A DNA stretch of 64,000 nt from Oikopleura dioica (Eukaryota > Animalia > Chordata): assembly GCA_907165135.1 (NCBI GenBank), contig OU015568.1:6510001-6574000 (forward strand). The letters are read 5' to 3'. How positions within the stretch are numbered: the first letter of the stretch is position 1; every line of letters starts with the position of its first letter. A program made the position numbers and the translations under genes. Below are positions 18,922 through 31,214 of the stretch, piece after piece. The notes below the pieces were generated by a model. That model saw only the letters and a program-made list of their open reading frames with translations. It had not been told where the DNA came from and did not search any database.

Positions 18922-21384
18922 ATGTCAGACGCGGAGTTGTCCCAGTTTTGCTCAATCACTAGTGCATCTCCGAATCAAGGAACGTTGATTTCTTTACGCA
19001 GAAAAAAGTTTAAAAGTTGAAATGAACGATTACAGCGAAAAAGTACCTGTCTCGTTTTCCGACATTTGAATCAGCAGTTGAATCTTTTCTGGAGAATCCT
19101 GAGAAATCTCCGATTCGGCCACCTGATCAGCCCTACAACGACATTTTAATTGATTCTCCGGAGAAGAAGAAGCTGATAAAGGACACGACCGTCGCTGGAA
19201 AAGGGCTGAAGAGGAAGGTTGAAGAGCAGTTGAATGCTTTTTCTTCAACTGGCAAGCTCGGAGGCTGGAAAAGCGCGCAGATGAGCTCGGAGGATTTGCT
19301 ATGTTTGGGCCGGGTCGCGAAATAATTTGGGTTTTTCTTGTTTTCATTCAATTTGCGATCAAGGAAGAGTCGAAATTCAAGCGCAACGAGTTTTGATCAA
19401 GCAAAAAAGCGAGGACTCGTCTTGAGACGACCAGTTCTCGTCTCATTTTACGACGGAAGTGTCAAAGCCTGCCAGAAACAAACAAGCGAAATTTGGAACT
19501 CGGCGGATTACTCGTCGATATTGAAAGAAAATGTGTTGTTTTACCAAAACTCTGTTTCTTCCAACGACTACAGCGAATTCATAAGGGTCTATCGACTTGG
19601 GAGAACGATTCGGAATGATGAGTGGCCTCATGCAGCTCTGGTTGATCCCAGAACAGGAGCTCTCATCGAGGAGTTTTTCGGGGAACAAGCAAGCGACTCT
19701 GAGAGGTTTTTTGAAAAACTGACCTCGATTGTAAATGAAAAATGCAGCGAAGATTTTGGGAAGAAAATTGAAAAGAAGAGAAAATTCGGCTGGGGGGACA
19801 AAAGTCTAGCACCGCCCGAGGGCCAGGATACCACACTCGCTACTAGCCAAAATATGGGGGCGCAACGGAGCGCGCCCGCTGAAATGAAAAGCACTTCCTT
19901 AGGACTCCTAAGTTAGGAGGTTAACCCGTTAACAGGGTGGTCGATTTCGCCTACGCTTTTGCTTGTCGATGATTGAATGAAATCAAGGATCCGAGGATGT
20001 GATTGGCTACTCGTTTCCACGCGTGCAGGTAAAACCTGCACGCCTCTGTTAACGGGTTAAAGAATTGATAAAGGTAAAAGCTTATTATCTGAAGATAAAT
20101 TTCAAAGGAATTTAAATCAAAAGAATTGATACTAATAATTAATAATTACTCTTTAATTTACTTAACGAAATCACTATAAATTATATGAGTATAAATTATT
20201 ACAGTCTATAATTAAAAGTCTATAAATCAAGTTTGTTAACAAATATTCACAGAGCAAAAGGAATAATGACTGGATGATTTTTTATCTTCAGTATTAATCT
20301 TTATTGATTCAATGATCCTCTAATACGAGCAGAAAGTATTAAATCTAATTGCCCCTTACCACGGGGCTTCGCCCCTTAGGTCCTAAAATGCCGGGGTCTA
20401 GTCTAGGGTTACTTAGGGTTACCTTCGGTAACCCTAACTAACCCTAGCCTATCCCCCTCGGGTGAAACTGTTCTGTCATTTTGCGCGGTGCCCCCTAACC
20501 CTAACAATTAAATTAAGTCAACCACTAATTAAAGCCAATCATAATTTTAATAAATTCATTTAGTTGCAAAGTCCATGACTCATGGACTATGAGAGTGAAG
20601 TTGGGAGAGAGAAGAGAAGGGATTGTGAATTGCCAATTCAGAATTGGGCAGCTCTCCAGCGAGAGTCTTGCTCGAGAGCGCTACTCAGCGAGGGCCTGTA
20701 TCGCGGTGTGGTAGCTTGGCCAGGAGTTGGTGCTAGACTTTTGTCCCGATTCCCAGAAAATTCGATGAAATTACTGATCAAACTGAAGACGAGCAAATTG
20801 CTATTGGTAAACTTAACTAATTGAAACATTTCAATGATCATCATGATGAATTTTCATTGATAAATTTTCTAGCGATTGCTGCATCGATGAAATCTACGAG
20901 CAAAAAGCCCCGCCGAGCAGCGGAAAAAGAGGCCGAGAGTTTGAAAGAGTTCGAAGAGCCAGAAATGAACTCTGACTTTGAATCAGTGAGTGAAGGCGAG
21001 GACGAGTCTGATGAGGAGAAGTCGTGTGGCCATGACCCTGAACTCGCCGCTCAGGGAACAGATGAACACCAAAAAGTGACCGATGAGTCCAGCCGAACTT
21101 CCGCAGTTTCAATTTGTTTCCAAATTCGCTCTCCAGAGGTACTTTTCGCGTCGATTTCGGCTTCATTAACTGCTTCCTAGAATAAACGCACCATGATCAA
21201 AATGCTCGAGACAGCAGATGCAAGTAGCCTGAGAATGACGTTGTTGAACATGGGCTACTGCCAGACCGAGTACGAGCTGATCAGAGCGTATCCAAAGGAA
21301 GTGATGGACCTTTCAGAAGGACGAAGCCTCCAAGACTTGAAAATCGTCAACCAAGATTCTTTTCTGATTCAGAAGAAAAACTAA
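18922..21384 (+). CDS. UBXN7: UBX domain protein 7 (UBA-like, UAS, UIM, UBX), interrupted by a TIR element
   Basis: MSDAELSQFCSITSASPNQAKKYLSRFPTFESAVESFLE (UBA-like); TSFDQAKKRG...WPHAALVDPRTG (UAS); EDEQIAIAIAASMK (UIM); YELIRAYPKEVMDLSEGRSLQDLKI (UBX). Confidence 0.85.
19925..20056. mobile_element. piggyBac-like MITE nested inside the Mutator-like element
   Basis: ttaa|cccgttaacag ... ctgttaacggg|ttaa: TTAA TSD with CCC...GGG termini. Confidence 0.85.
20403..20447. repeat. 21-bp stem hairpin containing TTAGGG/CCCTAA motifs
   Basis: ctagggttacttagggttacc-ttc-ggtaaccctaactaaccctag, one mismatch. Confidence 0.8.
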
Positions 21385-29642: not shown

Positions 29643-31214
29643 TTATAGACTTTGCTTCAAATCTTGAATTTTCATTTTCGCCGAATAATAATCTAAAAAA
29701 GCTTTCAAACAATCACTTCAAAAAACTTCTCGACCTTTATGGACAATGTGAAAAAACGGCAAAGCTTGAATTCTCGTGTACCATTTGTTCAATTTCTCAT
29801 TTTCTTCATATTTGAATTTTGGATGCAATTCCATCTGAATCAACAAACCGTAAACGAGAAAGTCAACCCAGGTCATATTTGCGCCGGTGAGATATTCGTT
29901 CTCGCCGAGAAGTTCGGTGAAATAGCTGTATCCCGCGATCTTTGCGTTTTCAATTGTTTCTTCTTCAACATTTTCGGGTTGGCCCATGAAGGTGGGGATG
30001 ACTAGCTGGCTGACGAAAGGCACAAGGGTTTCGTAGACGTATTTGACAATTGCATCGACTTTAATTGCTTCTGCTCCGTCAGGGTTCATGGCTAAAGGAT
30101 GAGCAAATGAACGACTAACAGATTGAGCGATTCTTACATTTCTGTTGTCCAAAATTGTCAATTAGATATTTTGAAATCTCCACTGATTCAGTAAACGTCA
30201 TGTTTCCATGAACCAGTTCGTTCTAGCTGTTTTCGGAGTGACAAACGGGTTCACAGGCAGCTGAAAAGTTAGATTTTGATTTTTTTGAGAAAATGGAGAA
30301 GAAAAAGGAAGAAAAATCGTATAGAAAAATATTGAAAATGACAGCGATTCCACCACCTTCTGAGAAAGAATTTTCAGGAGAGTTTTATAAAAAGTTCAGT
30401 TTTAAAAAGCATGAGCGTGCGCCATTATCTCAGTGGGTGCTGTCTCACGGCCACGCGTGGAAATGAGTAGCCAATCATATGCCCGGATCCATGATTTCAC
30501 TCAATCACAGACAGGCAAAAGCGTAGGCAAAATCGACCACCCTGTTAACGGGTTAACACAAAAATTCCCGGAAGAAGCTGATTTATGTTTGCTACAGCCA
30601 ATTATCTTGAATAAATGGGTCAAAAATGGCTTTTGTCAATGAATTTTTATAAAACATGTAAGAAAAAATTGGTGGTACTGTCGTACTTTTTACCTTCCAG
30701 GATCACTAACTGTAGATTCAAAATCAAAAGAGGCGATTTTCTGGAAATTAGATTTTCTGGCATATTATATTTTCTGGCAGTGCCAGAAAATCGCCTTTGC
30801 CAGAAAGTCTAACTGCCAGAAAGTCTAACTGCCAGAAAATCGCCTCTCTCGGACGGGAACAGTATGCTTCGGGTTTATTTTCAAAAACCATTCTTCCATT
30901 TGCTCTTGTTTTTCCAAGTCAATTTGGACGAATTCAATGCTGAGATTCTCGCACATTTTCGCGACCATGATCGTAGTTCTTGCAAAAGCGGATAGTCCAC
31001 TTACATACATTTTCATTTCCGCTTCTTTTTTCGTTTCTTCATTAGTAGTATCTTGCCCAGATAAGGAACTGTCGCTTGACTGCGATGCTGCTTCATTTTT
31101 TAATTGAGAATTTTCAAAATTTTTTTCTTGTTCTGAATCTTTTTCCAAGTCTTTATTCTCTGGCGCGTCAAGTTTGGCTACGTCACTTGTCGACTTTGAA
31201 TTATTGCACCCCAT
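29643..31214 (-). CDS. Glutathione S-transferase (Ser-type, theta/delta-like) with an N-terminal MGC acylation motif
   Basis: MGCNNSKS...MYVSGLSAFART...INPKHTVP / LVHGNMTFTESVEISKYL / YLTGANMTWVDFLVY. The roughly 600-bp first intron contains repeats. Confidence 0.85.
30452..30552 (-). mobile_element. Truncated second copy of the piggyBac-like MITE at 19925-20056
   Basis: cacgcgtggaaatgagtagccaatc...gcgtaggcaaaatcgaccaccctgttaacggg|ttaa aligns with the reverse complement of 19925-20030. Confidence 0.8.
30731..30845. repeat. Foldback element built from tgccagaaa subrepeats
   Basis: Ends aggcgattttctgg / ccagaaaatcgcct form a perfect 14-bp inverted repeat. Tandem tttctggca units sit on the left and tgccagaaa units on the right. 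Confidence 0.75.

Follow-up and report, generated by a model that had tools for sequence, protein, structure and literature searches.

Maize Ds and Mu insertion alleles, studied by Wessler in the late 1980s, are said to be imperfectly spliced from pre-mRNA, with the transcripts having been sequenced. Introners are the subject of a review that covers the work of Huff, Zilberman & Roy (2016) and Gozashti et al. (2022) and the examples of Micromonas and Aureococcus (PMC11282704). Among larvaceans, non-canonical introns derived from miniature inverted-repeat transposable elements (MITEs) are attributed by that review and by a further source to Fritillaria borealis, after Henriet et al. (2019) (PMC11282704, PMC13326754), and Yenerall & Zhou (2012) list Oikopleura, after Denoeud et al. 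(2010), with indirect evidence of intron gain from transposons (PMC3443670). Here we consider a 967-bp element with terminal inverted repeats (TIRs) that interrupts a coding exon of the UBXN7 gene of the larvacean Oikopleura dioica. It lies in a 64,000-nt stretch of the Okinawan OKI2018_I69 assembly (GCA_907165135.1, contig OU015568.1, positions 6,510,001 to 6,574,000 of the forward strand), which we call the window and in whose own coordinates features are given unless a scaffold is named. An original prediction, made from the letters of this stretch, saw an intron gain in progress, with a null allele as the fallback. Comparison with relatives and with other copies of the element shows that the insertion is real, derived and recent. 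On this DNA evidence we consider, with a probability of about 0.55, that it fell into the sole intact UBXN7 gene and produced a disrupted or weakened allele that is probably heterozygous in the sequenced animal, and that splicing is not needed to explain the data.

The insertion is bounded by a 10-nt direct repeat, AGAAAATTCG, at 19779-19788 and 20755-20764. Nine of these bases, AGAAAATTC, are the target-site duplication (TSD), with identical copies at 19779-19787 and 20755-20763; the tenth, a G, agrees by chance with the G that the next codon supplies. The left copy comprises the exon codons R-K-F, and the first two bases of the right copy are an AG (20755-20756) that forms an acceptor-like CCCAG. 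The element itself occupies 19788-20754, has the termini GGCTGGGG...GATTCCC (also given as GGCTGGGGGG...CCCGATTCCC) and closes with ...GTCCCGATTCCC at 20754. Its core TIR arms, at 19795-19836 on the plus strand and 20706-20747 on the minus strand, are 42 nt long and 81% complementary, and at the outermost bases, 19788-19794, the match to the right end is only partial. A 19-nt TIR core occurs at two places in the window, both at the element, compared with a chance expectation of 0.02. No open reading frame (ORF) longer than 80 aa occurs inside the 967 bp. The limits 19788-20754 and the 9-bp TSD are fixed by four sister elements of full length elsewhere in the genome, which have both termini in common with it and TSDs of their own. 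When the element and one TSD copy are removed, a single open frame, ...EKKRKF|DEITDQTEDEQIAI, runs through the exon that links the UAS region to the UIM region. The predicted structure (967-bp TIR element, 9-bp TSD, coding exon, restored frame and an AG supplied by the duplicated target) therefore agrees with the repeats, the arms and the four sister copies. A chimeric long read or a mis-join could in principle have put a repeat copy into the gene in a Nanopore-based, haplotype-merged assembly. A precise 9-bp TSD, complete TIRs and exact exon restoration together are a transposition signature, however, and we regard such an artefact as very improbable.

Relatives lack the element. The ORF that leads from exon 3 into the element served as the query of a word search, which recovered ten clustered ORFs of ENA and Logan assemblies; their representative, P0001, matches the query at 96% identity. 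All ten belong to O. dioica lineages other than that of the window, have ...ERKRKFDEITDQTEDEQIAI and then extend into the next intron in three forms (GN, GTFEF... and GFD). Because they continue into the intron in three forms, they are genomic, represent several lineages and show a site that is free of both element and intron. Transcript-type orthologues likewise have no interruption at the site: identity is 70% between P0002 and the window ORF, 89% between P0012 and P0002, and 35-37% between P0002 and P0014-P0016, which come from other larvaceans. The motif conserved across the site is KKR(K/R/N)(F/Y)-(D/E)(E/Q)I(T/L)D(Q/K)TEDEQ(I/L)AIAIAAS, with an Arg that is invariant in all orthologues. 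A decayed partial UBXN7 duplicate at C1:148,367-149,511 (L031 1868-3012) also keeps the empty target site. Since relatives and paralogue read straight through, the insertion is derived and no intron preceded it; an old intron at this position, one of the findings that were to have overturned the prediction, is ruled out by the orthologues and by the in-genome pseudogene.

The decayed duplicate has 82-93% DNA identity, carries stops and frameshifts, is without the N-terminal exons and contains an extra ~210-bp insertion in its UAS exon. No second intact UBXN7 copy occurs in the assembly, and as a candidate second functional gene or unmerged empty haplotig only this fragment with stops, at ~148 kb on C1, came up and was rejected.

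The insertion is recent: its TSD is perfect, the other exons and splice sites are intact and private changes are few. Apart from the insertion, all UBXN7 exons and splice sites are intact. Of 154 shared columns, the window exon shows a private amino-acid change in one, compared with three in a sister lineage, which gives no sign of relaxed constraint. The insertion is specific to the lineage or to the individual. It could be argued that it is already fixed in the Okinawan lineage and that UBXN7 is being lost there as a very young pseudogene. The only intact-looking copy is interrupted, the second, decayed copy shows that the family decays in this genome, and a nested MITE that is unique to this copy of the element could mean that the element has been resident for some time, although that MITE may have arrived inside the element. 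Six exons without further stops, frameshifts or splice-site losses, the single private amino-acid change in the lineage and the conservation of UBXN7 across larvaceans speak against such a loss, which we consider improbable.

Could the element be spliced out? All G*-AG pairs around it were enumerated, and those that keep the native downstream frame without a stop were retained. With 50 such pairs, chance alone is expected to supply an in-frame fit, which is therefore not evidence of splicing; the candidates are 940-1045 nt long. No GT donor restores the exon exactly, as had been stated from the outset, and the same holds for every G*-AG pair enumerated. One option uses a candidate GA donor at 19778-19779 (plus strand, AA|GAGAAA) with the AG at 20755-20756; it is in frame and costs one residue, as predicted, giving EKKKFDE without the invariant Arg. 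The alternative pairing of a GC donor at 19789 with the AG ending at 20788 is also in frame, as proposed, but loses eight residues (24 nt) rather than seven. By coordinate arithmetic, the same GC donor with the AG ending at 20872 is in frame too, but at the cost of the 43-nt exon half, which is skipped, and of the UIM, which is lost. All of the predicted in-frame products alter the conserved motif or the UIM.

Donor quality is a further difficulty. GA donors of O. dioica stand in the context AG|GAA, and GA-AG introns outnumber GC-AG introns there (PMC7072748). Neither the donor at 19778 (AA|GAG) nor that at 19775 (AA|GAA) fits this context. The relaxed donor recognition that the original prediction invoked is sound as regards G*-AG use in O. 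dioica, but its proposed donor lies off the published context. In OKI2018_I69 the median intron is 49 bp and 11% of introns are non-GT/AG, and G*-AG introns make up 11-12% of the total in O. dioica (PMC8008620); a candidate intron of ~980 nt is ~20 times that median. Two strong, canonical donor-like GT sites lie within the element on the plus strand, CAG|GTAAAA at 20029-20030, inside the nested MITE, and AAAG|GTAAAA at 20074-20075. Both are downstream of the first in-frame stop, a TAG at 19914-19916 that ends the ORF 19338-19916 (plus strand) after 42 element-encoded residues (G...S). The acceptor AG comes from this particular target, and among six other right-end flanks of the family only that of one sister copy (L006) starts with AG. 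The element carries no splice site of its own and would bring no usable pair.

A word search of a protein collection (lengths 48-553 aa) returned other lineages only, with no protein encoded by the window and no transcript of its lineage. An exact-pattern scan over all plausible junctions, together with a protein-guided scan of metagenome contigs, gave no match. Introners occur as many near-identical intron copies, and here there are ~5 full copies with no exon bias. Introners also pair a splice site of the element with the TSD to give exact removal, and this element does not. Because it has no splice site of its own and its family is small and not biased towards exons, it is not an introner.

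The idea of an intron birth in progress holds that a tolerant U2 spliceosome removes the element through non-canonical sites, so that the insertion is near-neutral and may drift to fixation. The most plausible pairs would be GA19778 or GA19775 with AG20756, and GC19789 with AG20788 or AG20872. Several observations are consistent with it: G*-AG introns are common in O. dioica (PMC8008620, PMC7072748), intron 1 of UBXN7 is itself GA-AG, the TSD creates an acceptor-like CCCAG, predicted pairing of the TIRs juxtaposes the element ends, and the rest of the only intact UBXN7 copy is undamaged with no excess of private changes. The listing of Oikopleura with indirect evidence of transposon-derived introns (PMC3443670) and the MITE-derived introns that are reviewed for the larvacean F. 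borealis (PMC11282704) provide precedents. Against this stand the impossibility of exact restoration, the change that each in-frame product makes to the KKR(K/R/N)(F/Y)-(D/E)(E/Q)I motif or the UIM, poor donor contexts, a length ~20 times that of a typical intron, competition from stronger internal GT donors, an acceptor that is sequestered in a long duplex in the predicted fold, and the fact that in-frame fits are expected by chance. We consider this intron birth possible but unlikely. A related suggestion, that TIR pairing aids weak GA-AG or GC-AG removal and that this is one of many exonic insertions neutralised at the RNA level genome-wide, seems rather doubtful. The original prediction is therefore upheld in part: the TIR transposon in the UBXN7 exon is real and its insertion derived, but in-frame fits are expected by chance, a conserved motif is altered, the element has no splice site of its own, and splicing is poorly supported. 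The null allele that was offered as the fallback is no less likely.

A disrupted or weakened allele is the default because the element brings no usable pair of splice sites. On this account a non-autonomous, probably Mutator-like element of 967 bp inserted by cut-and-paste and duplicated 9 bp of its target. Read-through would end after the 42 element-encoded residues and yield a UBA-UAS protein without UIM and UBX, and aberrant splicing from the strong internal GT donors would retain the premature stop. In-frame removal may take place to some extent through weak G*-AG pairs such as GA19778-AG20756, but the data do not require it. OKI2018_I69 is a Nanopore-based assembly of one male in which haplotypes were merged with HaploMerger2, and its two largest scaffolds are described as autosomes in the genome paper (PMC8008620). 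The UBXN7 locus should be diploid in that male because C1 is the 17.1-Mb scaffold and autosomal. HaploMerger2 tends to retain the longer of two alleles, a tendency from which insertion alleles would benefit. The sequenced male is thus probably heterozygous, and haplotype merging may have kept the insertion allele in the reference.

Several points weigh against a broken or weakened allele. The assembly contains no intact UBXN7 copy other than the one that carries the element. O. dioica routinely splices G*-AG introns (PMC8008620). The element end and TSD together form CUUUUGUCCCGAUUCCCAG|A, which looks like a good acceptor. The TIRs are predicted to fold into a ~55-bp terminal stem that brings the exon halves together, although the acceptor, both its AG and its pyrimidine tract, is then buried in that stem.

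The host gene is supported as an orthologue of UBXN7, a UBA-UAS-UIM-UBX adaptor, by its domains and exon structure, all features of which lie on the plus strand. Domain searches were run on single exons, and the exon halves were joined only for frame checks and substitution counts. Exon 1 (18922-18979, MSDAELSQFCSITSASPNQ) contains the start of the UBA region and is followed by a 56-nt GA-AG intron (18980-19035, CAAG|GAACGT...TTACAG|CG), which by inspection is the sole frame-preserving choice and fits the published donor context AG|GAA. Exon 2 (19036 to ~19313, its 3' end being approximate) carries the remaining UBA region and a linker, and intron 2 (19314-19367) has one GT-AG solution. Exons 1-2 are 55% identical to residues 21-94 of the full-length larvacean orthologue P0014, in which UBA_4 scores 33 bits and the match to the human UBXN7 UAS structure (PDB 2DLX) reaches E=1e-16; the window exons are too short for Pfam UBA. 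The left part of exon 3 (~19368 to 19787) encodes the thioredoxin-like UAS domain and ends in EKKRKF. Exon 3 matches 2DLX at E=4e-8, with a weak hit to Pfam Thioredoxin_7. Its right part (20764-20806, 43 nt) encodes DEITDQTEDEQIAI and the first half of the UIM, which is legible across the GT-AG intron 20807-20872 as EDEQIAI|AIAAS, follows the pattern acidic stretch-x-A-x-x-x-S and is kept in all orthologues. Exon 4 (20873-21138) begins AIAASMK... and encodes an acidic linker and the start of the UBX domain; after a GT-AG intron (21139-21180), the last exon, exon 5 (21181-21384), completes the UBX domain and ends with the stop at 21382-21384. That exon alone scores 20.0 bits with Pfam UBX, compared with a cut-off of 21.

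The family to which the element belongs is small. A genome-wide search found four other full copies with both termini (L002, L004, L005 and L006), together with end fragments, which makes ~5 full copies with that in UBXN7. Their TSDs differ in sequence and are 9 bp long in four copies and 9-10 bp in L005. Sister copy L006, of 701 bp, at ~1377-2077 of that locus (C1:16,954,920-16,955,620), has the TSD AGCTCAGGG. Its reconstructed empty site has 182 open codons across it, with only a sub-threshold Pfam match (DUF1451), and a coding exon may be interrupted here too. In the flanks of L002, L004 and L005, no long ORF was seen to cross the insertion site.

The copy in UBXN7 is composite. A nested MITE of 132 bp at 19925-20056, with CCC...GGG ends and TTAA/TTAA flanks (19921-20060 with the flanks), is missing from the other four full copies. 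The MITE belongs to a piggyBac-like TTAA family with at least 40 genome copies of 77-96% identity, and a partial copy lies on the minus strand in the GST region of the window (30452-30556). Further along the element, at 20328-20515, is a core repeat of ~180 bp that occurs at 40 or more genomic places. It contains a near-perfect palindrome of TTAGGG-like units (GGGTTACTTAGGGTTACC/GGTAACCCTAACTAACCC); the copies listed are 76-95% identical, most of them 86-95%, and far outnumber full elements.

The core also links the element to possible autonomous relatives. BLAST gives 92% identity between 20328-20515 and another locus (L013), next to which an ORF of 420+ aa scores near threshold with Pfam MULE (23.9 bits, cut-off 27.6). 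A second ORF, at C1:5821086 (5.82 Mb), scores 28.3 bits with the same profile, again near the cut-off of 27.6. At both places the ORF lies ~1.2 kb from the ~180-bp core. Reading frames that stay open for 541-596 codons and have a MULE domain at threshold scores are found at L013 1-1260 (minus strand; C5:10,116,726-10,117,985), C1:5,821,086-5,821,304 and C2:8,822,519-8,822,731, and the UBXN7 element may have autonomous relatives among them. The L013 element has the GTGTGGTAGC sub-terminal motif and the ...TCCC end in common with the UBXN7 element; their termini are otherwise only loosely alike, and the genome yielded no autonomous partner that ends in the same way. The UBXN7 element has two features of Mutator-like elements (MULEs), a TSD within 9-11 bp and TIRs without a transposase ORF. 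Because its family has a 9-10-bp TSD and shares core and sub-terminal sequence with elements that carry MULE ORFs, it is probably best classified as a non-autonomous Mutator-like element. A hAT origin (8-bp TSD) was ruled out by five copies with 9-10-bp TSDs, and a Merlin/IS1016-type origin was rejected with no genome match to PF12762 at E <= 0.001.

Two assets of the UBXN7 case are an empty site that several wild lineages and a paralogue document well and a target motif whose conservation is clear. Should the element be spliced, this dated, polymorphic-looking insertion with its known empty site would be a convenient test case for the conversion of exonic transposons to introns in a compact chordate genome whose spliceosome is permissive. 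Its imperfect products, shorter by one Arg or by eight residues, would reveal the cost of intron birth. If removal aided by TIR pairing applied to many such loci, this one would be an intermediate towards the Fritillaria condition and an intron birth that could be observed directly in a chordate. If it is unspliced, it is an ordinary deleterious allele, and it warns that the haplotype-merged OKI2018_I69 assembly carries broken alleles of conserved genes. The value of the locus rests in a population and RNA test rather than in the sequence alone.

Among known systems, the element resembles MULEs in its 9-10-bp TSD, GG(G) termini and sub-terminal inverted repeats and in the 180-bp core that it shares with a MULE-ORF-bearing element; it differs in that a same-termini autonomous partner was not found and in Pfam MULE scores at threshold (23.9-28.3 bits). 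As with maize Ds and Mu, an exonic cut-and-paste element could be partly removed through cryptic sites at its ends to give leaky alleles, but transcripts were sequenced in maize, whereas the UBXN7 case is known from DNA. With introners it has in common a short non-autonomous TIR transposon that is accompanied by a TSD in coding sequence and a candidate AG from the duplicated target. Introners, however, are present as hundreds to thousands of intron copies rather than ~5 full copies, and they carry one splice site that, with the TSD, allows exact removal. The UBXN7 element has no exact donor, and its AG arises only because the target begins with AG. The introns of F. borealis differ in their AG-AC and AG-AT boundaries, as opposed to the G*-AG of O. 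dioica, in a lineage with duplicated U2AF subunits, and in elements that are short and numerous rather than ~1 kb long and rare. Even so, both cases involve a larvacean host, a TIR/TSD element at a species-specific position in a coding exon and TIRs that can pair in RNA, and the same idea applies to both, namely that a tolerant spliceosome could neutralise insertions.

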